From positions 3,286,001 through 3,350,000 of the forward strand of contig NW_026262701.1 in the NCBI RefSeq assembly GCF_021869535.1: 64,000 bases of DNA. The letters run 5' to 3'. Below are positions 1,754-57,026 of the stretch, piece by piece. The position numbers and the translations under genes were made by a program. Under the pieces are notes generated by a model. The model was not told where the DNA came from. It saw nothing but the letters and a program-made list of their open reading frames with translations, and made no database searches. This DNA comes from Mytilus californianus. Lineage: Eukaryota. How positions within the stretch are numbered: the first letter of the stretch is position 1; each line of letters opens with the position of its first letter.

Positions 1754-2769
1754 GTAAGACAAAAAGTTATTATATCTCATGTTTTTCATCAATAATTTAA
1801 GGACCCCGACGTAAATATTTTTGAGTTCTTGAAAAACAAAAATCGACATAATTTAAATACAAATGTAGACATATAGTGCATTTGTAGTGTCTTTTCTAAA
1901 TTATTTTATCAAGACGTTTCTATGTTTTTCTATTTTTTTAAAGGAGTTGTTATTGTCACATACTACGCGGAAAAAAATACATGATTCAAAGTAGTTTTTC
2001 GTTTATTTTAAAAGGAAATAAATGAATAATTCTTAGAAAGCGTTGTACCAACCGCATTAAAATTCAATAATTGTTTAAAATATTCCAAGTTGTGTTTTTG
2101 CACGGCATAACATTTTTATGTATGAATATGGATAAAAAAAGTTATGTAGAAACTCTACACTGTACAAAACTACCCGCAGTTCTTGGTGGGGTTCGTGTTG
2201 CTCAGTCTTTAGTTTTCTATGTTGGGTTTTGTGTTCTATTGTTTGTCTGTTTGTCTTTTACTATTTTAGCCATGGCGTTGTCAGTTTATTTTCGATATCA
2301 ATATATCGCAGGTAAAACACTCAGTTTAACTTTCAGATAAGGGTAAAATCAAAGCCAAAGCTACACCGAAAGTAATGTGAAATGCTGCTGACGCGACATC
2401 GTCACTACGTTACCACAATGTAACGTTCATAAACTGTCTCAAGAACCAATATGACGACTGGAAGCGCTAACAGTTATTACTTTTTATCATATAACTAGCA
2501 TTACTATGCTAGTTTTTGCATATGTGTATCGAGCGGAAGTAAGCTACCCTTAAATTCACACCTAGGCTAATAAAGCATCAATCAGTCTTATGTGACTTCA
2601 AGTATAATTCGCGTGATCGGGCTGTTATGGGACTATCAGTCTTGGAGCGTTCGTACATCGATAGTATAAAAAGATTAATGCATGACCTTTTCCATATCGG
2701 CCCATGTATCATCCGTCGACCCATATCAGACCTCTACGATCGTCTCGGGCTGATATATATATATATATA

Positions 2770-3380
2770 TTTCCGCAAATTTGCAGATTTAACATTGTTG
2801 TGCTGATAATTAGAGTAGTTATGTATATATAAAATTGAGAATGAGAATATATATGTCTCGATATCCTAATAGCATGAGTTCGATCCTGGCGAGGGAAAGA
2901 CAAAACTTTGCTCCCGCAAATTTGCAGATTTAACATTGTTGTGCTGATATTTAGAGTAGTTATGAATATAACATGTGTTTTCAGCCTTCACTGGCGACCC
3001 AATGGATGGATCTGTCGTAGAGTTGTCACTTGTTTAGACGTACTTATCAAAATGATTATTACTGCGATTGTATCATACGATCCTTTACGATAGATATTTA
3101 GATAATCTGCAATCAATTCCATCTTCATGCTTAATATGTCATGTATTGTGTTACAATTCTAAGATTCTACTGACGAGGAAAGGTAACACTAGGCCACCGA
3201 AAGCTGAATTATTGTTCAGTCTAGGTGGCCGAGAAAGAAAAAAAAGAGCGATGGACACAGTGCACGCGGTAGTGTCTCGGTATCCCAATATCATGAGATC
3301 GATTCCCGGCGAGGGAAGAACAAATATTTGCTTCCGCAAATTTACATACTCAACATTTTTTTGCTGATATTTAAATTAGT
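2770..3380 (+). mobile_element. Degenerate tandem copies of a tRNA-derived SINE-like repeat
   Basis: ccgcaaatttgcagatttaacattgttgtgctgata recurs at about 2773, 2915 and 3334. B-box-like GAGTTCGATCC (about 2876) and GAGATCGATTCCC (about 3295), and A-box-like TGGCCGAG (3226). Confidence 0.55.
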
Positions 3381-3749
3381 TATATATATATATATATATA
3401 CAAGTCTAAATTGAAAACAACGTTCAAACCTATGATTGCGTTGGATAAAAACCGCAATTTTTATACGTGTGCATGCAAAACAAATTTCTTGGTAGAGGGG
3501 TCTAAATACAACACAAACAACATTTTCCAAAAGACCAAAAAAGTGAAAAAGTATATTTTAACAAAACGCATTTGACTAGCAGGTCGAACAACTGATGTTC
3601 TTAAACCCTGCTGACTGCCATTGGCGATTGCCAAATAAACGGATCACCAGATGTAACAAAATGGATCTTATGATAATTTATTACCAAACAGAAAACAATA
3701 AACTTGCGGAAAAGATGGTATACCGCAAACATGAGGTGGAAAAATTTGT

Positions 3750-3793
3750 ACACCATATCCGGACTTCGACAATTAATGTCTCTTCAGTGATGT
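3750..3793 (-). ncRNA. Minimal type I hammerhead ribozyme, copy 1 (GAAG core variant)
   Basis: Minus strand: ACAUCA CUGAAGA GACA-UUAAU-UGUC GAAG UCCGGA UA^UGGUGU. Differs from copy 2 by one base at 3764. Confidence 0.7.
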
Positions 3794-4287
3794 TAGGAAT
3801 CGAAACGGTATTTGGAAGGCCATGTAATTTACCTCAATTTAGGATAGACTCTTGAATTTTGAAAGAGTCGAAATAGGATGAACGGATCATATAAACCCGA
3901 AGGCAAATATAATACAAGCCCAAACGAAAAAATATAAACAAGTCTAAATTGAAAACAACGTTCAAACCTATGATTGCGTTGGATAAAAACCGCAATTTTT
4001 ATACGTGTGCATGCAAAACAAATTTCTTGGTAGAGGGGTCTAAATACAACACAAACAACATTTTCCAAAAGACCAAAAAAGTGAAAAAGTATATTTTAAC
4101 AAAACGCATTTGACTAGCAGGTCGAACAACTGATGTTCTTAAACCCTGCTGACTGCCATTGGCGATTGCCAAATAAACGGATCACCAGATGTAACAAAAT
4201 GGATCTTATAATAATTTATTACCAAACAGAAAACAATAAACTTGCGGAAAAGATGGTATACCGCAAACATGAGGTGCAAAAATTTGT

Positions 4288-4331
4288 ACACCATATCCGG
4301 ATTTCGACAATTAATGTCTCTTCAGTGATGT
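4288..4331 (-). ncRNA. Minimal type I hammerhead ribozyme, copy 2 (intact core)
   Basis: Minus strand: ACAUCA CUGAAGA GACA-UUAAU-UGUC GAAA UCCGGA UA^UGGUGU. It has the CUGANGA and GAAA core boxes, a 4-bp stem II, a 6-bp stem I, a palindromic stem III and an AUA cleavage triplet (cut between 4294 and 4293). Confidence 0.85.
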
Positions 4332-4644
4332 TAGGAATCGAAACGGTATTTGGAAGGCCATGTAATTTACCTCAATTTAGGATAGACTCTTGAATTTTGA
4401 AAGAGTCGAAATAGGATGAACGGATCATATAAACCCGAAGGCAAATATGATACAAGCCCAAACGAACAAATATAAACAAGTCTAAATTGAAAACAACGTT
4501 CAAACCTATGATTGCGTTGGATAAAAACCGCAATTTTTATACGTGTGCATGCAAAACAAATTTCTTGGTAGAGGGGTCTAAATACAGCACAAACAACATT
4601 TTCCAAAAGACCAAAAAAGTGAAAAAGTTTACTATATATTATTA

Positions 4645-4689
4645 GTTACATAGTGTGCTAGTGACCTAGTTACCATCACACTATGTAAC
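4645..4689. repeat. Perfect 13-bp inverted repeat hairpin
   Basis: GTTACATAGTGTG (4645-4657) and CACACTATGTAAC (4677-4689), 19-nt loop. Confidence 0.9.
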
Positions 4690-5616
4690 GAATTTGTCTT
4701 ACCGACTATCTTAACATGTGGTATTTAGACTAGTGGCCTTTTAAAGTGATCAAGTCTTCAATACCTTTAGTATTAAGAATTCATTTGTCTATACAAAAAC
4801 AAATGCCAACAATAACAACTTGTTAGCTTTAAATGTGTTTTGTGAATTTATTTTAAGCGTTCATCATCAATTTCTTTGTCTGTTGAAATCTTTAAGATTT
4901 TTCCTCAACACCGTTGTCTGTTTAACTTGCGAAACGCTTCTGCGTCTTTTTTTTGTCGCCATCTTTTTGGTCTGAAAGGGAAGTAACTCCTTACGAACCC
5001 CATATGGTAACTAATCCTATATGGTAACAAACCTCATATTTTTAGGACACCTATATCAAATATATATAGTCACCACGTGTAGTTCTTTAACTATTCATAT
5101 CCCCATAAATCTATAGGCATTAGGAGGTACATGTATTTTACCGGCTCATCTGGGACAGGCACGTACAGAATGTGGCTGGGTAAAACATGTTACCCGGAGC
5201 CCAAACGAGCCTCCGCTCCATTATTTAACAGCAATGGACAGTTATTTGGAATTTCTCCATAAATGAACAAACCATTAAAATAAGTTGATAACGGCTTAAA
5301 TCATCTGATCGATACAAAGTAACAAAAACACAGTGTGGGCGTGACAGGGTATTTATACATCCCTATAACAAACAAAAAAAGACACTAAGTACAGATCTGA
5401 GAGTACTCCCAGTTACTAACAGCTAGTTGAAAGCCAATAACAAATAATGAAAAATCATTTATCTATCATCACCCTTCCAACATCAAATGGATTGTATAAT
5501 GACGTCATTGCAGTCCAGTATATAAGACCAGGGCACTTTTGTTGATTTTATTTCAGGTTCCTCTGTTGTGTTATAGAATCATTAGTTTTATATCCAGATG
5601 AAAACAGAAAACTGAT

Positions 5617-8600
5617 ATGGATAAACAATTGAAGAAGGACGCACAGTTAAAAGAACTAAGGGATTGTCAACGTGAGTTTCTAAATTGCAAGACGGAATAA
5701 ATGTCTCTGAAAATGTTAGTTAGAAATGGATAATTTATATAAACATTATTATTAACAAAATGATGATATTTTTTTGCCATAAAACACACAGCTAAACAAT
5801 TGTTAAATGCAATTATTGTACTCAATGCATCGGAAATATGAACATGCTATACAATATCTTATGTTTGTACCAACTTCAGCCCGAAATTTTACAGTTTATC
5901 TTAATGCCATTGAATTCATGACCCAATCCTTTTAAAATTTTATTGTGCTGTTTGTCAAGACAAAATGTAGGTCAAGATTGGTTTTGTCGATTTTTTACAT
6001 CAGTCATTCACATTCTTTGCTTTAATCTATGTTACTGTTTGTTAACAAACTTTACAGTCAAACTTGGTCTAATTTGTATGAACTAACAATGCAAAACAAT
6101 TAGTGAAGATATTTCATAAATCGAAAACAACGTCAGTAATTGCATTTCTCATCATATTACATCTAGGTTAAATTTCAGGTAGTTTTTATGGCTCAACTGA
6201 AGATCCAACAGAGTACTATGACATTGAAAGTAGGAATTTCGGTAAGTAAAACGCAACACTCTTATAATAGATGAATACACAAAAAATAAGGCAAAGTTGC
6301 TTTGGATATTGAATAGATATATGTCTTTTTGGACATTGTTTGATAAGGAGAATAGAGAAAAATACCAAAGGAAAAATCAAACTGACAATGCCATGACAAA
6401 ATACAATAAGATCAAAAGACTAACAATAGTATATAAAACACAACATTTAAAAACATACTGAGCAACACGAACCCCATCAGAATCTGGAGGAGGGATCTCT
6501 GGTGCTTCGGTAAGGTACGCAGATCATGCTCCACATCAGTCACCTGTCATGTTGCTGTAATATTATTATAAATATATAACTATATATCGGTGAAACGTCT
6601 AAATCGGCATGACATATGACCGACAACCTGTAAATATCTCTCGTTTATGTGTGCTGTTTGGTTGCTGTCTCCTTGACGTGTTTTAAATTTGGCATACACG
6701 AATTCAGGTAGATTCACTGTATACTATCTTGGATTGTACAATAGCAGTACACATTTGGTTTAGTTTATTGCCTAAATCTGCAAAGAAAAAGGTCCGGTAA
6801 GGGCTAATTTCGGCCTAAAATTCGAAGTACATCTGACGAAAGATTTTTGACATTTTATAAACACTTTAGTATCTTCTTCATTCGATTCAATTGGTTATTG
6901 TAAAAGATTTTGACTGACTTGGTCATTAAAAACGCTCAAATCCAAGCTTTAATATGAAAAATCGATCAAATATGCCATTTAACGTGACTTTTCAGATGAT
7001 TTTTTTCTAAAATGGAAATGGCCGCATTCGTGCTCACTCTCAACATTTATATATATTATGTACTATCATTTAATACAACATATATTTAAATATAAAGAAT
7101 GAACACAAGTGCGGCCACATCCATTTAAGACAAAACCGTCTGAAAATTAGCACAAATGTTTAAATTGTGAAGATATCAATATTTTTGCATGCAATAATGA
7201 TGCTAGTACCAGATGCATGTCCATTGTATTATCAAAAACAGCCCATATTTATGTAACAAAAGCATGTTTCTTTCCAATTAATAAGTAAAAGTTAACAATT
7301 TAACAACTTTGTAAAAATGATATATTTTGGGGCCAAAAAGGGGTCTTACCGGGCCTACTCCTTTAGAGATAGTTATGCAATTTATGCGAAAAACTGTTTA
7401 TTTGTATTAAGAAAAATAAGTGATTGATTGCAATATCTAAAATGTTTAAACAAATATCAATATTTGTTTTTTTAGGATCAAATTTTCAACTTGGCCATTT
7501 AACGAGAGATAACTCTTACTGTAAATTTTTTATACTGGATTGATAGTGAAATTTCCAATTTTTACTTGTAGCAAGAAAACAAATGACATCAATTTTCTTT
7601 TCATTTTCTTAAAGCATATTATAAAACATATCTTCTCATATTTTACTTCAAAATTCTATCTCATAGATTTCTTTTTATTCACAAAAAAATGTTTTCTCAT
7701 GAACAATCTATGGAAATTTGGGCAATTTGACACGACTTGTAGATTGTGACCCATACGTTTTATTATATTTTTGAAAAAAAGCATAGTAAAATCGTATGAC
7801 AAAGTATAAGGAAATTCTATCAGAGGAAATATATATCGATGATCCACCTTAATTTATTTTATAAGTATAAGAATCGATGAATTTAAAACATTTTAAATAA
7901 ACGAATATTAATAGGATATTGAATATAACTATATCAAGATAAGCAAAATGATAAGAAATATGTCTTATTATATTAGAAAAATATTCAAAACTATGTATCA
8001 CATAAGCACCAACTTGCATTATTTAACTTTATAGTATTTTAGAGTGTTATTATTGATATGAAAACAAAATGCATACACAATTTGGTGTAAGTCTGTGAGT
8101 TACCAAACCAACTACACAAAATTGATAAAAAAGAAACATAGAGAGCAATTTGCATACAGTCATCAACAGTAGAAATGAGTTATACTATATACCAAGATGT
8201 AGAACTGTTTGATTCTAAAAAGTTAAAAATAGAATAAATAAAAATTGTCAAGAAAACACCATACATTTGTGTTATATTTCAAAATGATAAAAAAAAACAT
8301 AATTAAGATATTATGACCAATGACAACCACTGATGATACTTTACTCCACAAATACACGACTACAAGTAAAACAATAATTAACAATACACTATCAGAGAAT
8401 GTTCGGAGTAACAGAAACAAGAACAAAACTTTAAATTTTGTTTTATATCGGAAGCTCGTTTCTGGATTTACTATCACCAGGAACGTTCAAATCCAAAGAT
8501 CTTGAATTCTAGTATGTACGAATACCAAAATAGATCAGCAGCTAACTCAAATTAATAACCTGTTGATATGTATTTTTTACCTGCCTTCACTCCGTGGGTG

Positions 8601-9128
8601 AACGTACAAGACAAATGCAAATGAATGTCACTTTGACGTCAAATGTGTCTGAAAACCCAGTCTTTTGCAAACAAAAACAAATAATAATATAAAAAAACCC
8701 ACTCTTTTGTCTATTGCTGAAGACCGTAAGCGTGCTTTGAATTACTTTGGTTTTTAATTGGTATATTTGAATATCCATCTCATTTAAGTTTATATAACAT
8801 TTTGTTAACTGAAACAACATCTTCACTCACTGAAAAGAAAAAAAATACTAATGAGGTAGAAACATAAAAAAGAATTAGTGTTTTCATTCAGAGCACCAGG
8901 TGTGTTGACTAGACACACATATATTATGTACAGTGATTGTTAAGCCTTATACAAATACAATACTTTCGCATTGCAGACAACTCTCGAGGAATCCGACCTC
9001 CTGTAGTTGAAGGTTGTGTCATAAATCTAGGCAGTTTTGCGAAAGAGGCTTCCAGTAATACATCAGCTGTACCAGTAGGACCAACTCCACCACCACCACC
9101 GCCACCACCTCCCAATCCGCCAACATAA
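5617..9128 (+). CDS. Uncharacterised 89-aa protein with C-terminal polyproline tract (3 coding exons)
   Basis: Exons 5617-5671, 6179-6241 and 8977-9128 have canonical GT-AG sites (C|gtgagt, tttcag|, G|gtaagt, ttgcag|), phases 1/1, and total 270 nt. Product: MDKQLKKDAQLKELRDCQRSFYGSTEDPTEYYDIESRNFDNSRGIRPPVVEGCVINLGSFAKEASSNTSAVPVGPTPPPPPPPPPNPPT*. An in-frame TGA lies upstream (5599) and AATAAA signals lie at about 9203 and 9220. Confidence 0.7.
6782..7364. mobile_element. MITE with imperfect ~40-bp terminal inverted repeats
   Basis: aaagaaaaaggtccggtaagggc... at the left end versus ...gggtcttaccgggcctactccttt at the right end. Confidence 0.65.
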
Positions 9129-22196: not shown

Positions 22197-25100
22197 ATGG
22201 AACCAAGCAAGGACGATGGATCGCACAATGTGTGTAAAAACTCTGAAAGTTTTAAAGGTAAGCACGTCTCTATTAACACCATAATAGTTAATCAAAAGCC
22301 TGAAATATTGTATCAATTTAGATATATTCTTCATGTGTAGACGCTTCTGTGAAGTCAAGATCTCAAACACACATAACTGTTTAATTCCTAAATTTAACTT
22401 TATCTGCTGATACAATAACTGATCCAACACAGTTATGATGAATAATGTTTAAAGTCAACATTACTTTTTTGATTTCATGCGATTCCCTTCGTTTTGTTTT
22501 TAACCTTTATCAATTCAAACCATGATTTATGACGTACACTACTGTTTCCTCTAATATAAGTCAAGTATTCAGAGCATTACTTGTATGATCTTGTATGTTT
22601 CATTGAACTGTCTGTTGAATAAATATGTCACGTTTCGGGTTTTTCTAATTATTTATATCTACCTTTGAATTTTTTCCTGTTCACAATAACATACATGTAG
22701 TTTATTTATCTCCATTTACACATGATATTCAGAAAAAGTTCCAACCTTCCTGTCGCAAAGATGGATATTGGCATATCTCTTTTTAACGGGATACTTCAAT
22801 GTATATGCGTTGAGAGTAAACATCAGTGTTGCACTTGTTTGTATGGTGAGGACATCGATTGATAATTCAACATTAATGAATTCATCACAGAGCAATTTTA
22901 CGACTGATGAAACATGTGGTGTACTAGATGTCACGAGCCCTAAAGCTCAAGAGGTATTTTAGTCATTCTTCCATTAAAACCTCGATTCATCTGAGTAAGT
23001 TGTTTCAAAGGACAATCAATTTGCATGAAAATGTCCTTGATAGTTTAAAGCTCTACAACATTTTTGGTCCATATACATCCTTGTCTTTCAAATATTCGGC
23101 TTTGAGCGTTCCTGATGGTAAATCCAGAAAAGCGCTTCGGACGCATGCCATTTAAAACGTGTTGTTTTCATTTTTCTTTTACAGCAAAGCAAAGCAATTT
23201 AATTCATTTTAGGTTAAAAAAAAACAACACTCTATGGTATTGAAAACACCAGACGAAACAATGAATAGTACTGAAATCAACACAAAAGGCATTTGAGCTG
23301 CTTATATTGACCTTTTACACTCTAACATCGATCACACGGTGAAATTGTTATTGAACGAGGTCCAGCAAAGTGTTGAACTAAGTTTTCTGCTGCAGTTAGT
23401 TTGATAGGACTACTTGTGATAGATCAATGACATTTTTTTTAAAGTTGCATTACTATCAGTACATATCAGATTGACGACCACTTTGAGGCCCTGTCCTCTA
23501 GGTGATTTTGAATTAATCGGTAATTTTCAATGTGAAGTTTTCTGCCTAGTATAAAAATAAGAGGAGATGTGGTATGATTGCCAACAACTATCCACCTAAG
23601 TTCGAATGAATTGGATGTCAGGGATTATATGCAATCGTGCAGAATTCAACAATGAGAAATTCCATACCATATAGTCGGCTATGAAAGGAATATATGAAAC
23701 CAGTCATTTGGAAAAACTAACGACATAATTTATAACAAAGCAATTTATGAAAAACAAATATGACAGACTCCTGACTTGGGACAGGCACAAATATATGTGG
23801 CAGGATTAAACTAGTTAGATTGCGCCAAACCCTCCCTCCAACCTTGGACAATGGTGCAACAGCACAACACAAGTACACACTATATAAAACATTAAACGAA
23901 AAGCAAAAAAAGATAAGACAGCAACAAAAAACAACAAAAGAAAAGAACATATTGTATACCCAAGGCAACTGTTGTTGGTAACCATAAAACAAAGTAAATT
24001 TGTTGATACAATATCTATGCTTTAAGATGCAACCATATCAACATTCACATATAATTTATTGAAGCGAGGAGAATTTGATTGGGATAAGAACACAAGATCT
24101 GCAATATTATCTTCATTTTTTTACGGCTACGTTTTTACACAAATACCTGGAGGATGGTTGGCTGATAGATTTGGTGGGAAACGTATTTATGGCACCGCTA
24201 TGGCAATATCTGGAGTGGCAACACTTTTGATGCCAGTGTTTGCAAGAACCTCTGTTATACTTGTATACGTACTTCGTGTTGTTGTGGGAGTAGCTACGGT
24301 ATGTGTTTCATTCAAACATTTATAAGATATATTCATTGATTTTTCAAATTGATGATGAATCTATTGAATCTTAGTAAATAAAAGTAGTTTTGCTATTCCA
24401 TTTTAAACTGCCTTTTATCATATTTTGGAGGAAATTGGTTGATTTGTTCTCTCTTTGTTTTTATTTCCCTTTCTCACCCTTTATGTAGAACATTTTCTAT
24501 AGCCTCATGAAGATCGTTACTCGAAAAGGTTCTAAAAAGGAGTACCTCTGTTCATCTCCGGTTTTTGGTGGGGCTCTTGTTGCTCAGTTTTCAGTTTCCT
24601 GTTGTGTTTTGTATTCAGTTGTTTGGTGTTTTTTTTTTTTATTGTTTTTCGTTTTCGAATTATGATTGTAGATATACAGTTTGCTATCTTTCGCCTCTCT
24701 TTTAGTCCCGTCTGGTATAAGAAACTCGGCAGTCAGTGCTTCGTTAATTAAATGTGTCTAAGCAATCTGTTTTCTTGAAGTATCTGTTGATGAATGAAGA
24801 ACTTATTAAGAAACACATGATAAACTTAAATTCCAACTACTTTAAGGAACGTTGATCATAGATGAATTTGGAATTTTTTTTTTGGTCACTTTTGGTCCTA
24901 TCGCGCTTGACATGTTTAGAATTGAGTAGCACGAAATGATAATTATCTTTATATTTAATTACGTTTAATTAGCATGGCGGACGGTGCATGCATAACATGA
25001 GATACTTAACCTGTCGATGAACCCGGTCTCGCTCCTTTTGGGGTGCATGCGATTATCTCTCTTTTTTCTTTTTTTTCACCTTGATTTGTATTTCCCTTAT

Positions 25101-28100
25101 CGATTTATAAGATTTGAAAAAAGAGGGACGAAAGATACCAGAGGGACAGTCAAACTCATAGATCGAAAACAAAATGACAACGCCATGGCCAAAAATAAAA
25201 AGACAAACAGACAAATAATAGTACAGATGACACAACATAGAAAACTAAAGACTAAGCAACACGAACCCCACCAAAAACTGGGGGTGATCTCAGGTGCTCC
25301 GGATGGGTAAACAGGTCCTGCTTCACATGTGGCACCCGTCGTGTTGCTTATGTTATTACAAATCCGGTAAATAGTCTAATTCGGTAGGTCACATTAGTGA
25401 AAAGGGAAGGGTATTGTAGTTACGACATAAGGAACATATCCGATATCATCTGTGAAACGGTTATTCCATAACGGTCAACCAACTCGTGATGGCGTCCGTA
25501 AAATTTACGAAGGGATGATTTCAACTTCACCATTTGGAACTCTTGGTTTAATAGCTTCCTTGTGAGCAGCAATCCTCTATCAATGAAATCATGATAGGAA
25601 ATACAAGCCCGGGAATATCGTATCAATTGGGTGATATATACTCCGTATGCAGGCGCTGCTGGAATGTTGCTACATAGAAATGGAAAGTTCACAATTGGGA
25701 AGCGGAAATCATCTCTTTTGTCGTAAAGTTTTGTTTTCAACCGACCCTCATTGTCATTTTCTAGATGTAAGTCAAGATATGAGGAAGACTTAACTGTATC
25801 TGTAGTATCCTTTATCTCTAGTACGATGGGATAGATTCGTTCAACATAGTCACCAAATTTTGTATTATTTAGTGAGAGAACATCATCTATATAGCGGAAC
25901 GTAAAGTTAAAGGATATTGCTAACTTCTTATCTTTCTTCCTAAGAAGTTCTTGTATGAAGTCAGCCTCATAATAATAAAGAAACAAGTCGGCAAGAAGAG
26001 GGGCACAATTGATTCCCATTGGAATTCCGGCAGTCTGTTGAAAAACACGTCCTCCAAACGTAACAAATATGTTGTCAATCAAGAAATCAAGCATCTTGAT
26101 AATGTCAGTTTCAGAGAATTTTTTGTTTGATTCAGAGTGATTCTTTACAAAGTAGATTTATCCCTCCCCAAGACAAGATACTTGTATCTACGTTCGCCAT
26201 TCTTTTTAATGAAACAAAGTAATACCAACTCTTTCAATTTGTCTTTTAGTTTCGAATGAGGAATACTTGTGTAATTGTAGAAAAGTCAAATGTTTTAATA
26301 CTATTGCAAGATGAGAGAGTCTTAGATTGTATGTACTCTAAAAGATCTTTGGAATTTTTTAGTATCCACATCTGATTCACGCCACCTCTAGAATAGGCAT
26401 TTTCACAATAACTTTGGAGCCCGGGTTTGATTACTGATTAAATATATGTTAATAATTAAGAAAGAGGTTTCGTGGAGCACTTGGAAGACCCAGCAATATA
26501 CCGTTGTTTGTAAGAACACTTATGTAGTTTAGGTATCCAATGCAGTGATGGAAGATCCAGTTCTTCATCTTTGGTTGAAATTCCAAAGGAACATAGAACA
26601 GACCTATGATTATCCAGAATTTCCTCTTTGGTAAGTGTCGTGAGGGTATATGTTGAGTTTCCAAATGAATTGTCAATACCTAATTCATTTCTCAAGCAGT
26701 TTATGTAATGATATTTACACACAAAAACGATGTTGTTTGGGGCTTTATCTGCGGGGACAACAACATAATTGTCATGGAGGTAGGACAAGTGTTTTGCAAC
26801 ATTTGGGTCTTTAAAAATTGACGTAGCGTGGGTATTGATAGACCCATTTAGTTTCTTAATTCGGATTTGTATCAACGACCTCACAGCCTTAATCCATTCG
26901 GAAAGAGTATCAACGTCTTCTTTCTCGCGTTTAGCCCATTGCCTAGCATAATCCTCGACTGAATCCATCAGTATTTTGAAGTTGTATTTCCAATTGATGG
27001 ATTTAGGCTCGCGATATTTCGTACCTTTGGATAACAAATTTCGCAGCGAAGTGTTATTGACAATGTTGAGGTCTCCGGTAATCACGTGGCCAGCCGGATT
27101 ATATGTGAATTGGGAACTAGCACAGGTGCAATCAGGAGGTTTAGACTTAAAGTCGTCAATGTTGAGATCCTGCAAAACGTGTTTGTAATTGAAAATTTTA
27201 GTTGCAATTAGTTTGGTATAGGTATGAGAAATTATTAGTACAGACTGATCTTTAAAATAAGGAGGTATTTTCGACTGAACTAATTTATGATGAAGGATAT
27301 TGCCTAAGTTGACGCAATCGACATTTGAATACAATTTTCCTCTTCTCATATCTCCTTAGCCATCCCAGCCGTATGGCAGCAGTGTTTTCTTTTTTTTTTT
27401 ATATCCCACCCATCATGTTCTTCGGAAAATGTCTGTACCAAATCAGGAATATGGCAGTTGTTTTTCATTTGTTCCGTTGATTGATATCATTTGATATTGT
27501 CAGTTTTGAATGGACATCCTTTTTGAATTTATATTGGAGTTGGGTATTTTATGTTTTACATTTTTATTGCTTATGTTTTTTATCTTGTACTTTCAATTTG
27601 TTATTGTTTCCTTTGGCACATCTACGTTTCCTTTCATGTTTACCTAGCTTTTGTTTTTTGCAATACATAAAGCAATCATCCCAGATATCGATATTTGAAC
27701 ATAAACCTTTATATTGCAAGAACAGTCATTTCTTTTCTTCTCTTTTATTTCCATTATTTTTATTTAAATTAAACGTATTCATTGTTTAATCATTCTAATG
27801 TTTAGATTTGAATGTTCTGGAAGCCTAGAATGTATCAAGTTTTTTTTTTAATTTTTGTTTTTATTTATTTAAGGGTGTCGTGTTTCCTGTTGGCCACTCA
27901 ATGTGGGGAAGATGGGCTCCTCCTCTAGAACGTAGCAAACTTATAGCAACGTCCTACGTAGGCAAGTTTTATATTTACATTAACTATGTTTTATTGAGTT
28001 TACTTGTATCAAATTTAAAGATATATCGTATTATTTATGCTTATCATTTTAATATTTAGTGGCGACAATCTGAAGGTGACCTTTTAAGTATGTTAGCATA

Positions 28101-34100: not shown

Positions 34101-37100
34101 CATGAAATAAAAATAACTTTAGCTACAAACAAAACAAAGAAATTACTTTATAAGTTTGGTGCGTTTGATGTGACTTTCTGGATTGGCAATTATCTGGAAC
34201 TCAAATGAAAAAAAGTATGCAAGGTAGTTAAAAACGTGAGGAACTAATATAGTACGGTTACAAGAAAGGGTAAATTTGATACATTAGTGGACTTATTTTT
34301 TTTTTTTTGCATTTTTAAAATTAATTCTATTCGATTAACGCCTGTGGTAAAATGCTAAATGCTGCTTTTTTTTTAAATTGAGGTCAAAGGTCAGTAGGCG
34401 GAACTTTTCGAAAATCCTTCATGATACTTAACTAGAAATCAATGAAATCATGCTCTGGTAATGTTAGTTTGATTGATATTTTACTTCTACGCCCGAATGC
34501 CAGATATTGATGCCTTGTACACTGCTTACATTATGTGCGAAAATGACAAAAACTATCTTAATCCAGGAAAATGTTTACCCATAAATCTTTAAATCTTAGA
34601 TTAAATCAGCAATAATATTGGACATTATATATAGACATTTCCAAAAAGTATTTGGTTTAAATTCAATGAATTATAAAGAAATAAGTCATCTTCTGACTTT
34701 CAGTCAATTTTGAGACTATCTGCATTAAATTCTGTACTGTTCAGACAATTCGCTTTTCGCTTGCATTCAAATCAGTATTGTTCAGTAGCTTTTCAGACAA
34801 TTAGGAATGATGTTAAGGTTTACAGGTGAAAAGCAATTACTGAACAATCTGAACATAGAGCGAACAGATCTTGATTGACTGCCAGAGAACGGTCTTAACA
34901 GTAATGTATTTACTGCAGTAGATAAGTATGAAAAATGACTGAAAGACTAAAAATGAATTGATAGATTATTGTTCAATCTTTTAAAGGCTGTTCAGATCAA
35001 AATGACTGCTATACTTTTTTTTGTCCTTTTTGATGTATAGCTCTTCATAATTAGCTTTTGATTTTCAAATATGTTGGCCTCGAGCATCACTCAAGAGACA
35101 TTGATTGTCAAAATGCGCATCTGGTACGTTTATGTTATTTCGGAACGAAAATTGAAAAACCAGGTTCAATCCACCATTTTTTTCATAAGAAAATGCCTGT
35201 ACCAAGTCAGGAATATGACAGTTGTTGTCCATTCGTTTGATGTGTTTGTGCTTTTGATTCTGCCAATTGGTTAGGGACTTTCCGTTTTGAATTTTCCTCG
35301 GAGTTCAGTATTTTTGTGATTTAACTTTTTTTTTGGAAAGTTTCTGTTATTTCGTAACAAAAAATTGGAACGTTTATGTAATTTTGAACGAAAAATTGGT
35401 TTATTAGTGGCACTATTCTAACAATGCTCGAACATATGTAACAAAAATTCACGAATCCAGATTACCATATAGGACTAATATAGCTATGTGTCGTTTTCCG
35501 ATTTCATCGGGTTTTCTTCATGATTGTGAAGTATGTGGTATGTGTAGCTGGTATCCTAGATAGTCATCTTTACAACTTTGCCTTGAAGGCGACTCTAGCT
35601 TTTGTCTCATAAATGTATATGTGATGATGACTTACTAATGTTATCGTTGTGGTTTCTTATTTGATGTAATACATAAAAAGTTAACCATTAGGCTCTTTTG
35701 CTCTGAAATGTGCTTTTAATATTCCAGCATTTTCCGGATCTGGAACATTTCTGGTTGCCACAGGTTTCGTGCCTTGCGAGAAAAAGTACTTAGCAGTTCT
35801 GTTTCTTTGTCTGGCAGTAACGATGAGTGGGTTTACCAGAGCCGGATATTCTGTTAATCATATTGATGTTGCGCCAAAGTAAGACTTTTGTCTTTTATGT
35901 TTAAAGATTAAGTGTCATTATGTAATGCTATTCCTTAAATTGAAATCATCAAGCTGTAAATCAGGAGTCAAATGCGTTAATAGGTCCCTACAACAGATAA
36001 TTTATTGACCTTAATAAAATTCAAAGTCAACGGTTGTGCTGACTATGATCTTCCCATTTTCCAACGTGGAATGAGATTTACTCACAATCGTATAATTAAA
36101 GAAAGGTAAATGAACAATTTAGGAACACCAAGCAACAACTTTGTATTGTTTTTACCGAAAAGCTATGACCTCTCTTTAAAAAAATAAACACCTTCTATAT
36201 TTCCAGAAATATCGTATGTGGGCATTGGAAACTACTAGTCGTAGTTGTTTTCCGAAATATACTCTTTTATATATGTGAGAAGGAAAAATTGTGAAAGAGC
36301 AAGGTCGTCATAATCATTCCACATGAAAACTAGTATGTAACATATTTCGACAATACAAATTTTGTACATTAAGCCGCACCTTCGTTATGTTTTGACAAAA
36401 AATGTTACGACCGAGATAATTTTCCAACACCTTTTTTTCATTTAAGTATTCAATGCTTCTTTTTGTAAATTTATTGGGGTTTAAAAGCGTTGACCGAAGT
36501 ACATGTTGTATGAAGCGCCGAAGCGCTTCATTCTAAAAATGTGCGCACGGTCAACGCTTTTACAACACTTCAAAAGTACTAAAAGAAGCAATCAATACTT
36601 ATAATTACTTTTTTTTGCTAGGATCATGAAATCACGATTTCTATCAAGTTTTTCTTTTATTTACCTGTGCACTTTATTGTGGAAGCTCGTGTCATCATGA
36701 ATGTTACATTTCATTTTGAAATGAAGGTTAATTTCGGAATGACGCGAGATTGCTGTTAGCCAATCAAAATAACGTATTATAATGAAACATACGTATAATG
36801 TAATTATAAAGACATAATGTCCCTAACTTTAAATCCTTGAAACCTTTATACAGGTAAAAAATCAAATGTAAAATTCACAAAAAAGCCGGATATACCCTTT
36901 TCTTTTTCAACAACCTCAAATACTATGATTTCAGAGAACATATGCTATCATTTTGTGCTATTGGCATCAAAATAAGGCATTTCCTGTTATCAGCAGTCAC
37001 ATCCTGTTGACAAAACTACATCAGCATATAGTTGGTTTCAGTAGAGAGCATGACTATCACTTAAGATATGCATGTGTCTTAGCTCAGGACAGGACACGGT

Positions 37101-39185
37101 TTCGCGCGCAAAAACTTTAGATCTGAGAATAATCGTCTAATCTGTAGTTTAACATATTGTCACCTATTCCTGGTTTTGACATTTTGAGTGTTGATTCGCA
37201 TGGCAAGTGATGCTTGCTATCAGGAGACACTTACCCAATCGACGTACCTGCTCTTGCTCCTTTAGTAGCTCATGCGATTTCCTAAGGTTTTGTTTGAAAC
37301 TTTACATATTTAGTGAAATACTCGTTGAACTGTTGTTGCTTTTGTAATATTTTCCTTATAATTGTTGTGACTAATGAATTGTGACCTCAAATGTTTGATG
37401 TTGTGCAATTCTTGATTATTATTCATTTTGGTTTTTGCAATGCAAAGTAATTAAAGAAAACATTTTGTGTTTGTCTTGCATTGTAATATGGAGAAAATCT
37501 TGTTTGATATACGTCTTCAACATAAATAATCTAGAATAAAATTACCGAAAATTGACTAATTCATTATTTAAAATTTAATCTGGCTATAATATGGATATTT
37601 TTTTTAACTTAGATACAGTGGAATAATGTTGGGCATTTGTAATACCATGGCAACAATTCCAGGAATGGTTGCTCCATTAGTAGCAGGTGCTTTGACTCCA
37701 AATGTATGTAAACTTATCATGTTTCACCCCCTCCATCTATATTTCAAATACTTTATTCGTTTTTGCCATGTCGTTGTGAGTTTATTTTGACATGCGAGAT
37801 CGAATGTCCCTTTGGTATCTTTTGCCTCTCTTTTCCTTTTCTTCGAGAGGTATAAGATAAGTCTTCTTCTATGTACAATCTTTAATCTATATCGCATGTC
37901 ATTGCATAACATGCATGCTTACCCGATCGATATGGACCTTTTTGGGACATATTGATAGTGTTATGAGTTCATCGTCGTCGCAATTTTGCATAAAAGACAC
38001 AATAAACGAAGCAATTGGTTGTTGTTTGCTGAATATCCAGGGGGTAATAAGTTCATACATGTTCAGAACGAAAAAAACAATAAATATAAATAACGCATCA
38101 AAAAGGTAATTGCTTGAAAGTAGGTCGACTTTGATGAAATAAAAAAAATTGAACTGCCACCGATGAGTTTAACCTAGAAACACAAAAATGAACGAAACAG
38201 ACACGCGACGTTATCTTGCAAAAATCAGAAAAGCAAGTACTTTTATCATGATAAATAAATATTTACAGTATAACATATCATGAAAATTAAATTGTATAAA
38301 CTTTAATGCACAGTATCAACTTTGAAATTTTATTACACAACGTCATTTGATAAAACGTTAAGAATTTTAACAGTAATAATTGTATGCACCAGATGCGCAT
38401 TTTGACAATCAATGTCTTCAGCGATGATCGAGGCCAAAATACTTGAAAATCTAAACCCTTATACAAACTTTGAAGAGCTGATCAAACCAAAAAGGACTTA
38501 CAGTATAGCCAAATTCGGACAATGAATCAGAGCTTTGCATATATTCCTTAATTTCAAAACCAATTTCCAAAATTGCATTACAGCACATTTACATCAAATA
38601 ATATCCATATTTTCTTGCCAGCAATGAGGGGTGACTTCTGGGCCAGTGATACCCTCGGTGACTTTATTTTAATCTAGATCACAGATCAGTTCGCCGATGA
38701 TGTAATGTGTCTTTGTGTTTTGAAAAAGAAAAAAATATCTTCCTTTATTTCATAAGTGGAATAGAAAAATCATATTTATTCAGCCAAGTATTGAATGAGG
38801 ATGTGGCAACATAAGTATGTGTCACATATTTCTTTTATTGTTTTTAATAATTCTTAATCCTGTGTACCTTTTCAAACAAAGCTAACATAAATGTGTGTTT
38901 TGAATTACCGTTTTTGTCTCTCTTTACAATGGAGTTGTTTTTCAAAAATCTGTTTTTTCCCCTCTTCATATCTAGATGAAACTGTTGTTTTCATTGCAGG
39001 ACACTCAAGAAGAATGGAGAAATGTGTTTTATGTGTGTGCTGTCTTTTACCTCATTGGTATAATTGTATTTGGAGGTTTTGCAAGAGGGGAAGTACAGTC
39101 ATGGGCGAAAGATAAAGATACGGAACTCGATATTGTTGATATAAAAGTACCCTTGACGTCTGAAACAGCGCAAAAAGATCAATAA
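22197..39185 (+). CDS. SLC17 family (sialin / vesicular glutamate transporter-like) MFS anion transporter, 513 aa, 11 coding exons
   Basis: Exons 22197-22257, 22733-22953, 24065-24298, 27874-27961, 29031-29126, 31021-31151, 31875-32024, 33832-33964, 35728-35878, 37613-37703 and 39000-39185 total 1542 nt in one open frame. SLC17 motifs: [100 protein letters not shown]. The intron 4 donor is GC. AATAAA at 39340. Confidence 0.93.
25121..27349 (-). mobile_element. 5'-truncated Naiad-type Penelope-like retroelement (RT, decayed) in SLC17 intron 3
   Basis: CxC linker ([17 protein letters not shown]), then [37 protein letters not shown] and RYIDDV. Two TAA stops (26456 and about 26438) and a frameshift near 26275 separate ORFs 26456-27349 and 25420-26094. 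The 3' UTR is 25121-25419. No GIY-YIG domain is present. Confidence 0.88.
36445..36599. repeat. Long nested palindrome / fold-back element
   Basis: AAAAGCGTTGACCG (36483-36496) pairs with CGGTCAACGCTTTT (36548-36561). Inner stem ATGAAGCGC-CGAA-GCGCTTCAT; outer AGTATT..TGCTTCTTTT / AAAAGAAGCA..AATACT. Confidence 0.85.
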
Positions 39186-42789: not shown

Positions 42790-43222
42790 CGTCATCGTCG
42801 TTGAGGAATAAGGGTCCCTATGTCGTCATCCTCCTTGCTGCAGGATAAGTGCCCTTTGTCGCCATCCTCGTTGCTGCAGGATAAGTGTCCCTATGTCGCC
42901 TTCCTCGTCACTGCAGGATAAGTGTCCCTCTGTTGCCATCCTCCTTGCTGCAGGATAAAATTCCATATGTCTTCATCCTGGTCGCCCAAAGATAGGTGTC
43001 CTTATGTCGTCATTCTCGTCGCTGCAAGATCAGTGTCCTTATGTTTACATGCTCCTCGTTGCAAGATAAGTGTTCCTATGTCGTCGCCATCCTCGTCGCT
43101 GCAAGATCAGTGTCCATATGTAATCATTATCGTTGCTGCAGAATAAGTATCCCTATGTCGCCTCCTCGTCACTACAGTGTCCCTTTGTTGCCATCCTCGT
43201 CGCTGCAGGATAAGTGTCCTTA
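42790..43222. repeat. GC-rich 37-bp minisatellite, about 11-12 copies
   Basis: Consensus CAGGATAAGTGTCCCTATGTCGCCATCCTCGTCGCTG, head-to-tail without spacers. Confidence 0.9.
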
Positions 43223-46200
43223 TTTCGCGCATTCTGTGATACTTGTTTTAGGAGAAACAAAAGCGGACTCATATGCCTCAAATCATTTTAGGGAGGAGTT
43301 ACTAACTGAAAAGAAAAATTTCGAACGTGATTTTCGATGAAAACTTTTTTTTATGTATACTGAAATAAGACATGAAATAACGGAATTTAATTTCACTTTG
43401 AACAAAGCCTTTCATAAAAGAATAAATTGCCTGAAAAGTATTTTTTACAAACATTTTTTTAAATGTATGAAATTTCACAGCAAAGTTTTATTGAATTTTA
43501 AATTCCCGTTATGTAAATAGTTACCATTCATGCCATGTATTTGTGAACAATTAAAGGCTTTTAGTAATGCAGGTAAATAAATTTTACTAAATATATAGTC
43601 CAAGTATTTATTTCATTTAGAAACCTCTTGCATTATCAGCAATCATCGCTGCTAAAATTGATATTATTTTTAAAAAACCCACGAATTCCTTTTCCAGTTT
43701 GCAACTTGGTTTTGTATTTAGGCACAATAGTTTTGCAATATTGATAAAAAGAAGTGTCCTTGTGTGTGTTTAAAACAAGCTCTCAGTATCGCAAATCAAC
43801 TAATGTTATTTGTACGTTTCTGCGATAAATGTGTTAGATGAGCAGGTTGTAAAAGATACTAGGTTTACATTAGGCATCATGACTGTACAAGATGCATACA
43901 GGATATATCACTACAGTTTTTGATCACATGCACATATTTTCGTATACTGTCTTCAATTTTCTAAAACTTCTTTATTTGACATACACCTCACTCAAAATAT
44001 GTACTTAGATCTTCCAGCAATTTAGAAGAACATGAATTAAAGTTTATTCATTTGATATCCTAGTTGGTTGTCTTAATAATTCCTTGGGATTGTTATCTGC
44101 TGCACCGCATTCAGTTCAATTCCTTTAAATTTGACTTCACAAACATAATATAAAAAAACTGAAAGAACAAAACATTATGGCCTAGAATATTCCCTTTGTT
44201 ACCTACAAAACCGTATAAACTTGACAATAGGACAACCATACGTGATATGACTATCAATTAGCAAATATTATCTGTCAATTGCATACAGTTATATAATCTA
44301 TACAAATACATAGTCATAAATCTAGGTGATATGGACACACACAAGGACGATGAATCCCAAAATTTGGTTAAACATCGAAAATTCTGAATGGTAAATAAGT
44401 TTCAAAGCAACAAAGATGGCATTGAAATAGTGTAATTTGTATACTTTTGCTTACACATTCGTCATGTGGTTTCATACGTGCGAACATACCCGAATAAGTG
44501 AGTGACATGTGAGAAATTTATGTAAATCTAATAAGTCACATTACTAGAGATCGTCATCCAAAAAAACATTTAAAATCGAAAGGGAGCTTACCGTTTAAAA
44601 TCGATCCCAGCATATGTTTAATGTGTTATGAAGTATATTAAATATTGTATTAAGTTTGACGGTTAAAGTTCAATAACTTTGAAACAACAATAATCGTAAA
44701 TCAAAAGGGAGATTTCTTTAACCGCTTCAAATATTCTATACAAGCTTTAAAAATTTCATGACATCATTGTGTTGCTTTTTATGGCGGACATACGGTCAGA
44801 CAAACTGACTGACGGACTGACGGAGAGCGTTACATCATGATATGTTCCGTCTATGACGGCCGCATACAAATAATATAAAAATGAAAAAGAAAGTGTCTAT
44901 TTAGTTTCGGATGTAGTTTTGTTGCTGTCCAACTTACCTAATTTATTTAATTTTAATAAGTTCATGATCATTTGTTTCATTACATATCATTCAATAAGTA
45001 ATAATTTTAAGAAAGCATTTTTTTAATAAGGAAACAGAATTCGTGTGATAAGTTCATTATGGGAAATAAATAGAATATATATATAAATATGAAAATAAGA
45101 GGATATGGTATGATTTCCAGTGAGATAATTATCCACATGAGACCACATGATGAAGATCTAAGTTAAAGTTTATTTTGTTAAATAAAAAAAAACTACATAT
45201 ATCTTGTGTAAATTTCGTTTTCGTACTGTAACCAAGTGTTCTTGATTCATACCGGCTTCTTGTCGTACATAACATAGCCTAAAACCTTTAGAAATGTGCA
45301 TCAAATAATGTCTTTACCTGTCCAAAAGTGTTGTTGTTGTTTTTGTACTCCTTCTTGTATACTTAAACATTTATATGATGAATTTTGGATACTGTAAAAT
45401 TTCACATGAATGTATTCAATCTACATTCAAGAATTTAAAATTTGAATTTGTGGTATGTTGGATAATGGAGTAGTAATAACGGATGTTCTATATCTGATAA
45501 CAGTCATGTAGGTATGTAAACATATTATGTAAAATTCCAAACTTAGTTTAATATGGCACCTTCTGTGGGAACGAAAAAAAAGGAATCTCAAAATCCAGAA
45601 AAGTTTATAACTTTTCTGAAACATAAAATGCATTAAGAATTTAATTATCCTGTTCCTGCCTGATGCCTTAAAAAATGTGAGTCATAATTGCTTTTTTTTA
45701 ATAACTGGAAAAAGATATAAACATTGCAAATGCGCTGTATTGCAAAAGTCGTATAATAAGTTACACTTAACACAACTGGTTGAGTATAATTCTAAATTGG
45801 TAGTATGGTCCCATTTTTTGGTGGAGTATGGTTTAGACATTAAGAACAGGTTATGATCTTGTCTGACACAAGTGAAACATAGATCGAATATATGTCAAGC
45901 ATTGGTTAAGACCGTATCAGCCTTGTCCACTTTTAAGTTTTGAGTAGGATAGAGTTCATGGCAGTTCAGTTAGTTATAATTAAGATGGCGTCAAGTAATA
46001 TTGAGTACATAGACTACACAGACTTTGTAAAACGTCATCGGTGTCTGAGCAAAAGGTGAATGAGACAGAGTTTTGTCAAAGAAAGTCTCGTCCTTTTTCA
46101 TCGGAAAATACCAAGACTTAATTGATAAATATTCAGTGTCTACTTGACAAATATTACAAGATTTTATCTGAAAAAAGACATTATCAATATTCTATATTTC

Positions 46201-55000: not shown

Positions 55001-57026
55001 AAAAAAGAGAGGCGAAAGATACCAAAGGGACATTCAAACTCATAAGTCGAAAATAAACTGACCACGCCATGGCTAAAAAAGAAAAAAACCAACAGACAAA
55101 CAATAGTACACAAAACACAACATAGAAAACTAAAGACTAGGCAACACGAACCCCAACAAAAACTGGGGGTGATCTCAGGTGCTCCGGAAGGGTAAGTAGA
55201 TCCTGCTTCACATGTTAGTACAAACCCCGTAATAAGTCTAAATCGGTAGGTCACATTCGGGGTAAAGAGAGACGGTATTGTAGTTACGACATTTTGAACA
55301 TGTCCGCTATCATCTGTGAAACGGATATTCCATACGGTCAACCAAACTCGTGATGGCGTCCGTAAAATTTACGAAGGGTTGTTTCAACTTCACCACTAGG
55401 AACTCTTGTTTTAATAAAGCAGACTTTAACTAATTTTCTTCTAGGTGCAACGATCGGACTAATAGTCACGTTTGCTGATTCAGGATTGCTTTGTGAGTAT
55501 GGTTTTGACAATGGATGAGGTTCAATAGTTTACATCACTGGTAAGTGTACAATTTGATGGCATGGCGAAATAACAATAACTGATCTATATCAACGAAACC
55601 ACCCTCACTTCAAAGCACGTTGGTATAGACACAGGTAGATAAACATTGGAAGGATGAAAGCTAGCATCTGTGTAATCGTAATTTGTTGGAAAGATGAACA
55701 ATGCTACTATGCATTACACAACCGTCGTGCGTTCCGAAAAAAAGCTTACAAATTACAAAAAACAGGAGGAAACTGGTTTAAAGTGTGGTAGTGGTCGAGT
55801 TGTTTAAATTTTAGAAGAACAACTCGTCAATTAGATTTATACTAACATGGTTAATGGACTAGGTTTTGTTCGTTGTTGTATGTATTAGGGCATGATTTGA
55901 ATCTGAAGAGTCGGGTGTTGTTGGTTGGTGTAATCAGCGTACTTTCAAATACGTTGGTATTTCCAGATAATCTTTTATCATATTACTGTATACACCTAGT
56001 AAATTGTAAGTGAGAACCATGGGTATTGTATCATAACTCTTTAACTTATAAACGTTAAGGCCATTGCAGTTGCAAATAATGAATAGATATAAGGTAATTG
56101 ATGTTCATAAGAAGGCACAAACCAATGTGTTTATCTGATCCATGTGTTTAGTCTGAAGTTGTCTATATGTTGCATTATCAAGGTGACATACAGCTAAAAC
56201 AAACACATAATGTGTAAAGTGTTTTTTACTGAAGTAATTTGAAATAATAATGATATAAGTAGAAGAGATGTAGGCTATATTACAACACACAGAGGGAAAA
56301 CAAATTGAATAAATGTATAAAATCAAAATAGGTTTCCAAATGTGTTTTTTTCAAATGCTCTTCAATCTTGATTTTATTTGACCTTCCATTTGATGAGACT
56401 TATGAAGAAGAAACGCGCGTCTAGTTTGCTGAATGATAAGCCTGGCATTTTAGCCATATCAAAGAGATACATGAACCTGACATATATTCAATAAAAAGGA
56501 CCTTTAAGACTACCGGTGTTATACATCATTAAGACAGCAACAAACAATCTGAAAAAAACATTCGGTTTTCCAACAATATGTATATATATATGTATCTACC
56601 TATACAAGACCAGATAGTATACATATTAGACATGTGTGAGGACCATTTTTGAAAATCTAGTTTGCTTTCTGTTTGCTTAAGATTGACAAAATTACAAACA
56701 AATAGGGATGCAAAGGTATTAATTACATACTCAAATAGGGAAACAATGGATGAAAAAGGCGGAAGATACCAAACTATTCAAACTCTTAAGTCGATGAAAA
56801 ACTAACTTTACTATGGCAAAAACGAAAAACGACCAATAGATAAAAACATTATACAAAACATAACATAGAAAACAATACACTGATTAACACGAACATGAAA
56901 GTAAGATACAACACAATGCCACATCATTGACAAAATAAAGATTTTTCTTAACGTATGCATAACGATCTGTTTATGATTTAAGGCAATAGTAGCTTACCGA
57001 GGTTCACATCTCATGAATCGGCAAAG

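Follow-up and report, generated by a model that had tools for sequence, protein, structure and literature searches.

An array of 538-bp repeats with type I hammerhead motifs in a mussel genome is probably one insertion of a non-LTR retrozyme-like element

What is the short array of 538-bp repeats that lies beside a TA run near the start of this 64-kb window (the whole stretch of DNA analysed), and by what route did it arrive there? The sequence-only reading took it for a tandem repeat with a hammerhead ribozyme in every unit on the minus strand, and for a candidate retrozyme. The ribozyme-made circular RNAs known so far in animals come mainly from retrozymes, and the route by which retrozyme RNA is copied into DNA is unsettled. 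Our analysis bears out the retrozyme proposal, in that a tandem repeat whose units each hold a type I hammerhead with a palindromic helix III is joined by homology, conservation, retroposition and RNA of the ribozyme sense. We consider the array to be one insertion of a non-coding, non-autonomous non-LTR retroelement of the retrozyme kind, with a probability of about 0.85.

The array was located at 3401-4628 of the window, directly beside a (TA)10 run at 3381-3400, which agrees with the roughly 2.3 head-to-tail units that had been read from the letters. It is 1228 bp long with 34.8% GC and holds 2.28 units at a period of 538 bp. The copies at 3394-3693 and 3932-4231 lie 538 bp apart and are 99% identical, the third copy is partial, and divergence between units amounts to 1.3%. 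The longest period in the TRF search was 500, below the length of the unit, and the array is therefore invisible to that program. The array had been placed in the probable 5'-UTR intron of a microprotein gene; it lies outside the 5617-9128 span of that proposed gene. Unit positions are counted from the predicted cleavage site along the minus strand, the ribozyme sense, and the parts of the insertion are as follows.

3381-3400, no strand: (TA)10 run, the 3'-side remnant of the (TA)n microsatellite receiving the insertion
3401 (about 3400)-3755, minus strand: 3'-terminal partial unit, unit positions 1 to about 356/362, placed by BLAST of the unit
3756-4293, minus strand: the sole full 538-nt unit, bounded by the predicted cleavage sites 4294/4293 and 3756/3755
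3938-4029, minus strand: second well-kept block, unit positions about 265-356, directly upstream of the fixed 3' terminus
4294-4628, minus strand: 5'-truncated unit, unit positions about 201/204-538, the 5' end of the insertion
4633-4639, no strand: short ATATATA stretch at the 5' junction, likely the other half of the (TA)n target

The partial unit at 3401-3755 ends in ...CAATTTAGACTTGT, the fixed 3' terminus of the family (pattern match at 3400-3421), and the block at 3938-4029 recurs at 3400-3491 and 4476-4567. Compared with the family majority the full unit carries three changes, among them A to G at position 15.1 of the hammerhead core. Two hammerhead motifs were found in the array, scored here with a covariance model (R1) that is described below.

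4288-4331, minus strand: intact type I hammerhead, R1 39.3 bits, E 1.7e-8, predicted cleavage 4294/4293
3750-3793, minus strand: second hammerhead copy, with GAAG, R1 34.4 bits, E 4.1e-7, predicted cleavage 3756/3755, probably impaired

The minus strand at 4288-4331 matches letter for letter the motif that had been spelled out from the sequence, with ACAUCA at 4331-4326, CUGAAGA at 4325-4319, GACA/UUAAU/UGUC at 4318-4306, GAAA at 4305-4302, UCCGGAU at 4301-4295, A17 at 4294 and UGGUGU at 4293-4288. These letters give a helix I of 6 bp, the CUGAAGA box, a helix II of 4 bp with a 5-nt loop, GAAA, A17 and a helix III formed by the 8-nt palindrome AUCCGGAU. The short palindromic helix III together with a 6-bp helix I and a 4-bp helix II is the standard metazoan type I form, a palindromic helix III being a requirement of a ribozyme that pairs with a second copy (PMC4209133). 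The AUA cleavage triplet is unusual yet known among natural hammerheads (PMC1636495).

The two copies differ in their catalytic core. All of the type I core letters (C3 U4 G5 A6 N7 G8 A9, G12 A13 A14, A15.1-U16.1, H17) are complete at 4288-4331, whereas the copy at 3750-3793, 538 nt downstream, fails at 15.1, where window position 3764 carries G for A. The GAA(A/G) variation is thereby confirmed, and the G15.1 variant is present in only 2 of 48 sampled arrays. The A15.1-U16.1 pair is required for hammerhead activity. Cofolding of two hammerhead domains yields an 8-bp intermolecular helix III at -26.7 kcal/mol, compared with 2 x -9.1 kcal/mol for the monomers, which misfold. Cleavage at 4294/4293 and 3756/3755 had been proposed to free an RNA of exactly 538 nt, and the predicted spacing fits. 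With G15.1 in the downstream copy, however, such release from 3401-4628 appears doubtful, because the GAA(A/G) contributed by one partner of a dimer would act at the site of the other, so that one of the two sites should be impaired either way.

A covariance-model search, which had been suggested as a check, gave a divided answer. Rfam returned no hammerhead across the whole window at its gathering score and none at E<=10 on 1.45 kb; on 96-nt stretches the full-length Hammerhead_1 model (RF00163) was matched, but the GAAA copy scored 22.4 bits and the GAAG copy 18.4, both under the gathering score of 34. The lineage model R1, which was built from 16 hammerheads of the published 355-bp mussel family and contains zero sequences from the 538-bp family, was run across the full 64-kb window with filters off and ranked the motifs at 4288-4331 and 3750-3793 top, both significant. 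In addition, a strict hammerhead descriptor matched once in the window, at 4288-4331, against 0 matches in 150 simulated windows, and a 32-nt core pattern matched twice where 0 were expected.

The relationship to known mussel ribozymes was then read from the base pairs. The genome's Rfam-significant type I hammerheads sit in 354-365-bp tandems, and their letters are those of the cloned, self-cleaving Mytilus galloprovincialis retrozyme (PMC7229834 supplement). In an alignment of the 538-bp and published types, helices I, II and III show 14 of 14 standard pairs in every sequence, compared with 15-52% pairing in slid controls. Five pairs differ on both sides between the types (one in helix I, two in helix II and two in helix III), which amounts effectively to one deep split rather than many independent events. 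The 538-type motif is clearly a homologue of the mussel retrozyme hammerhead that has been validated biochemically, and the two differ by compensatory changes.

A third type is present in the window as two decayed relics, at 35084-35127 on the plus strand and 38386-38427 on the minus strand, and the intact form predicted from them has 395 exact copies in the genome at a spacing of about 350 bp. The third type has helices I and II in common with the 538 type, from which it differs by a G-C to C-G flip that leaves helix III palindromic. Helix III reads UCCGGA in the 538 type, UGCGCA in the third type and CGCGCG in the published type, palindromes in 3 of 3.

Two further proposals on RNA structure fared less well. 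A distal AUACCG/CGGUAU pair had been suggested as an extension of stem I; its coordinates are correct, but the extension finds no support from informative covariation. A local hairpin (unit 28-33 with 47-52) competes for the 3' strand of the pair, both pairings being compatible with the consensus, and the conserved block of a related expressed family stops at 4286, short of that 3' strand. A viroid-like rod was also considered and rejected, the 538-nt RNA being not unusually structured (z = -1.47).

Conservation of the ribozyme among genomic copies had been set beforehand as a test, and the hammerhead is indeed kept better than neighbouring sequence among more than 10,000 of them. A 35-nt hammerhead core (unit 507-538 plus 1-3, with one N and one R) has 10,780 matches in the 1.65-Gb genome, compared with 4,275 exact matches for a control 35-mer directly downstream (unit 40-74) and 3,887 for one directly upstream (unit 440-474). 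The core is thus 2.5-2.8 times commoner than the flanking controls, and it is 3 times commoner than the published-family hammerhead pattern (six Ns; 3,364 exact matches). Reversed-pattern controls gave 0 matches in every case. The downstream control is intact 2.5 times less often than the hammerhead, though it would be expected wherever the hammerhead occurs. A control near the 3' terminus (unit 296-330) reaches 12,601 exact matches, a high count that reflects the retention of this block even in short insertions. By hammerhead count the 538-bp family, with at least 10,780 cores and roughly 0.35% of the genome, is the most abundant such element in the mussel assembly.

Variation among copies gives a similar picture. 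In 54 sampled arrays (165 units), half of them chosen by hammerhead pattern, none of the 103 variants common to at least three arrays falls within the 44-nt hammerhead, where 8.4 would be expected, and the variant rate is 0.021 there compared with 0.053 elsewhere. The other, blast-ascertained half shows the same direction as a trend only, with 0 of 29 common variants in the hammerhead against 2.4 expected and rates of 0.023 and 0.039. Sliding windows also find a low variant rate at unit positions about 265-356, and this block may be regarded as a candidate recognition or priming region for a reverse transcriptase.

In order to establish copy number and tandem organisation, a BLAST of the unit against the genome had been called for. 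It returns short arrays of the unit, dispersed over many contigs, at 95-100% identity and with up to approximately 35 repeats at period 538. The 3' end lies at unit position 356-366 in 34 of the 54 sampled arrays, and at exactly 362 in 28, while the 5' starts are scattered over unit positions 1-489; arrays that do not have the canonical 3' end are mostly interrupted or rearranged copies. The terminus ...CAATTTAGACTTGT continues into (TA)n in nearly all arrays, TATATA ends 10 of 12 upstream (5') junctions of other arrays, and the flanks of different arrays are unrelated apart from (TA)n. Across the genome the canonical 3' junction followed by (TA)5 occurs 3,653 times, in some cases where a pair of elements meets tail to tail at a single TA run, and several of the sampled loci contain adjacent inverted copies.

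The sequence inside the unit at the position of the fixed end is GACTTGTTTATATTTT, which has U/A microhomology to a nicked (TA)n. Divergence within arrays has a median of 2.0%, compared with 5.3% between arrays. Spread of the 538-bp family by retroposition, that is by target-primed reverse transcription of ribozyme-sense RNA, is supported. The array at 3401-4628 looks to be a fairly young daughter insertion, given 1.3% divergence between its units, and with only 2.3 units, that divergence and G15.1 in one of its two ribozymes it is probably inert.

Transcription of the minus strand had also been anticipated, and we aligned three raw RNA runs and one RNA contig set to 3300-4750. Ribozyme-sense RNA is present in the stranded runs X22 and X23, the reads of which carry another organism label and in many cases come from a related family with only an 80-nt hammerhead block in common. 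Over the hammerhead block these runs have a 97-98% bias to the minus-strand-RNA orientation, and at 4280-4328 the depth is 384-579x in that orientation compared with 11-13x in the opposite one. High depth is limited to 4286-4365, the hammerhead plus 35 nt upstream, and hundreds of reads extend into unlike sequence on both sides of this stretch, which indicates that a different, more highly expressed family has the same 80-nt module. That family has fixed changes only in loop 2 (4312) and upstream (4336, 4362). Segments of the unit body are covered at 40-110x in X22 and X23, with a strand bias of 4-10:1. Run X21 covers the whole unit at 30-80x in both orientations about equally, a level that DNA carry-over of about 3% could explain. 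No pile-up of molecule ends above threshold was found at 4294/4293 or 3756/3755 and reads cross the site, which fits circles and uncleaved transcripts equally well, circular and tandem templates looking alike on a tandem reference.

As a retrozyme-like element the family would be expected to move as follows. Source arrays would be transcribed on the ribozyme-sense strand (minus here), and neighbouring hammerheads would pair into an extended helix III via the palindrome AUCCGGAU and cut after AUA, giving 538-nt monomers. A host RNA ligase could close these into circles, by analogy with related mussel retrozymes of 350-390 nt. A (TA)n microsatellite would be nicked by a reverse transcriptase that is provided in trans, and the cDNA would begin at the U/A stretch at unit positions about 357-362, beside the conserved block. 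Copying would cross the cleavage site for one to many rounds with a variable stop, and would leave arrays that share one 3' end, are shortened at the 5' end and lie between two (TA)n stretches. Within this scheme we infer the self-cleavage, the dimer action and the circularisation of the 538-nt RNA.

As the cDNA starts 362 nt past the cleavage site and the arrays run through that site, a cleaved linear monomer did not serve as template; the template was a religated circle or else an uncleaved multimer. We put forward only tentatively the view that the fixed internal 3' end, the (TA)n flanks and the nearly identical units of young arrays are footprints of rolling-circle reverse transcription, in which a circular 538-nt ribozyme RNA is microhomology-primed on nicked (TA)n by a Naiad-type Penelope-like element, the hammerhead being a portable module moved between unrelated retrozyme bodies that each parasitise a different reverse transcriptase. 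It is rather unlikely, in our judgement, that the same retroelement was instead copied from an uncleaved multimeric linear transcript, with a hammerhead that serves otherwise or only trims transcripts. A multimeric template would accommodate the fixed 3' end at about 362, from which it follows only that the template ran across the cleavage site, and the RNA reads that cross the site without ends; it would also give variants present in some but not all units, as are 89 of the 505 within-array variants. However, 83% of the within-array variants are private to one unit or common to all, as expected from a single monomer, the hammerhead is kept better than its flanks, and RNA of the related mussel retrozyme family is mostly circular in vivo (PMC7229834).

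The retrozyme-like reading calls for a reverse transcriptase from elsewhere. Truncated 5' ends, partial tandems and a microsatellite target are insertion features in the style of Penelope-like elements (PLEs), and no RT/GIY-YIG or PLE ORF was found in the 62 array loci examined. A Penelope-like element is our best guess for the partner by analogy, possibly one of the (TA)n-targeting Naiad type. The RT-like ORF pieces at 25.4-27.4 kb of the window were considered for this role and rejected, as they are positionally unrelated to the array. A 3' tail in common with the neighbouring SINE-like repeat was likewise rejected, local alignment being no better than shuffles.

It is very improbable that the arrays are simply a dispersed satellite that spread as DNA, borne by Helitrons/Helentrons or by segmental duplication, and that the hammerhead is a dead relic without a role. 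Bivalve genomes are rich in short satellite-like arrays on DNA transposons (PMC7492417), and cleavage of the 538-type hammerhead is a prediction here; but such spread sits poorly with array flanks that are unrelated except for (TA)n, with random 5' truncation beside a fixed ribozyme-sense 3' end, with a core kept 2.5-2.8 times better than neighbouring sequence and with a helix III that is palindromic across three families. There is similarly little chance that the units are the pLTRs of an autonomous Penelope-like element and the array its remnant. Penelope-like elements do have hammerheads in their pLTRs, partial tandems and 5' truncation (PMC4209133, PMC8557442), and the adjacent inverted copies seen at several sampled loci would fit. 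Against this, no reverse-transcriptase ORF lies inside or next to any of the 54 sampled arrays, and the arrays, with up to about 35 repeats at period 538, have (TA)n immediately on either side.

The 86-aa and 79-aa ORFs do recur with each unit, as had been pointed out, but the idea that they encode a small protein and that the RNA motif is incidental can be set aside: the third-position excess of ORF86 in raw variant counts is lost once repeated occurrences of a variant are collapsed into one (p = 0.41), only 32 of 94 copies keep ORF86 intact, a Pfam search of the ORFs gave chance-level matches only, and unit lengths range over 530-541.

Among known systems the retrozyme-like element stands closest to the approximately 350-390-nt non-LTR retrozymes of M. 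galloprovincialis (Cervera and de la Pena 2020, PMC7229834), which come from the same host lineage and, like the 538-bp family, are AT-rich, non-coding, dispersed short tandems with a hammerhead of 6-bp helix I, 4-bp helix II and 8-nt palindromic helix III. Non-LTR retrozymes are defined by just this picture of hammerhead repeats that are tandem, AT-rich and non-coding (PMC7229834). In satellite 2 of newt and axolotl and in the axolotl retrozymes, likewise tandem repeats, the palindromic helix III is minimal and the hammerheads perform best as dimers (PMC7229834, PMC4209133), and our cofold predicts the same dimer for the 538 type; these elements belong to a different phylum, however, and have no sequence relation to the 538 unit. 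Plant LTR retrozymes are also non-autonomous, with hammerheads that delimit a circularising RNA (PMC7229834), as proposed for the 538-bp family. They differ in their type III hammerheads, LTRs, primer binding site and polypurine tract, 4-bp target-site duplications, high GC and Gypsy-type mobilisation, none of which applies to the 538-bp family, where a primer binding site and a polypurine tract are presumably lacking.

Like the 538-bp arrays, Penelope-like elements including Naiads are truncated at the 5' end, form partial tandems and now and then have inverted copies side by side (Craig et al. 2021, PMC8557442), but the arrays have no ORF and the likeness is one of insertion style. Canonical PLEs carry hammerheads in their pLTRs (PMC4209133, PMC8557442). 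Naiads have a (TA)n insertion bias, are very abundant in Mytilus and are said to have no hammerheads (PMC8557442); by analogy they are a candidate partner for the 538-bp family. A 2026 preprint derives animal retrozymes from PLE pLTRs and gives vertebrate families of 51-972 bp (bioRxiv 10.64898/2026.07.22.740005), a range that takes in 538 nt, which the sequence-only reading had set above the lengths usually reported. Neither the unit length nor the Penelope link is new, and animal retrozymes are an already known kind that involves no new principle. What appears to be new is the 538-bp family itself, together with the way in which it outnumbers the published family and inserts strictly into (TA)n from a cDNA that starts inside the unit; the letters of the 538-type hammerhead were not found in the searchable literature, in line with the sequence-only reading's suggestion of a possible undescribed retrozyme family.

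Thousands of insertions bear an unusually clean scar, in which the cDNA begins at one point within the unit, the target is (TA)n and 5' truncation is random. Such a scar means that the copied RNA ran across the cleavage site, and it restricts the reverse transcriptases that come into question. The 538-bp and published 355-bp families, which have the same ribozyme type with another 3' end and target, moreover represent a natural experiment on partner specificity. The 538-bp family is three times commoner in the assembly, its cleavage and circles being predicted only. Outside the ribozyme the units, 538 nt in one and about 355 in the other, are unrelated, and the 538-type ribozyme differs from the published one by A17 for C17, A7 for U7 and the five pairs changed on both sides. 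In both families the arrays stop at a set 3' end within the unit and are cut short at the 5' side. That 3' end lies about 362 nt past the cleavage site in the 538-bp family compared with about 43 nt in the 355-bp family, and the former targets (TA)n whereas the flanks of the latter are not (TA)n, differences which suggest that the two families probably used enzymes with different target preferences.

RNA depth was unequal along the minus strand of the 538-bp unit in X22 and X23, the two stranded runs filed under another organism label, where an 80-nt block at 4286-4365 consisting of the hammerhead and 35 nt upstream of it was covered 5-8 times as deeply as the rest of the unit. Reads leaving this block continue into unlike sequence on both sides, so the 80-nt hammerhead module is also carried by another highly expressed family in a related organism.

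Hammerhead relics are also found elsewhere in the window:

35084-35127, plus strand, and 38386-38427, minus strand: two decayed relics, both belonging to a third type of hammerhead
56391-56445 and 59596-59741, both plus strand: old relics, members of the published 355-bp retrozyme family
23106-23144 and 52807-52847, both plus strand: old relics of another type, which is weaker and has the palindrome AGCGCU

The third-type relics resemble the 538 type, the hammerhead of the 538-bp family, in helices I and II and have UGCGCA as helix III and C at position 17. Both carry a G12 to A change at a CpG, and the intact form of this type occurs 395 times genome-wide at a spacing of ~350 bp.

Two repeats lie beside the 538 array, the 2.3-unit tandem itself:

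3240-3380, 2860-2970 and 2743-2829, plus strand: tRNA-like, SINE-looking repeat with 3' ends on TA runs
4655-4700: near-perfect inverted repeat (hairpin), directly 5' of the array

The array and the SINE-looking copy at 3240-3380 have the same (TA)10 in common, where they meet tail to tail. Similarity between the tails of the SINE-looking repeat and of the 538 array was not significant, and ARAGORN called no tRNA on the SINE-looking repeat. RNA run X21 contains reads with an 'opposite strands' joint (4648/4690) at the hairpin, whose microRNA-family match was at chance level.

The remaining features of the window are as follows:

25423-26157, minus strand: broken retroelement, open frame 1, weak RVT_1 match (E 1e-4)
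26459-27355, minus strand: broken retroelement, open frame 2, no match in Pfam
42795-43228: tandem repeat with a 37-bp period, copy number 11.9, 71% matches

At seven sampled genome loci, including L044, L045, L050, L057, L059 and L018, a second 538-type copy lies inverted within a few hundred bases, the pairs standing head to head or tail to tail. Such pairs are reminiscent of inverted arrangements that have been described for Penelope-like elements, or alternatively of repeated hits on one (TA)n. On contig C1, a 538-type array is adjoined by a 641-aa open frame (L054:4779-6701, minus strand) containing Mab-21 nucleotidyltransferase and C-terminal domains.
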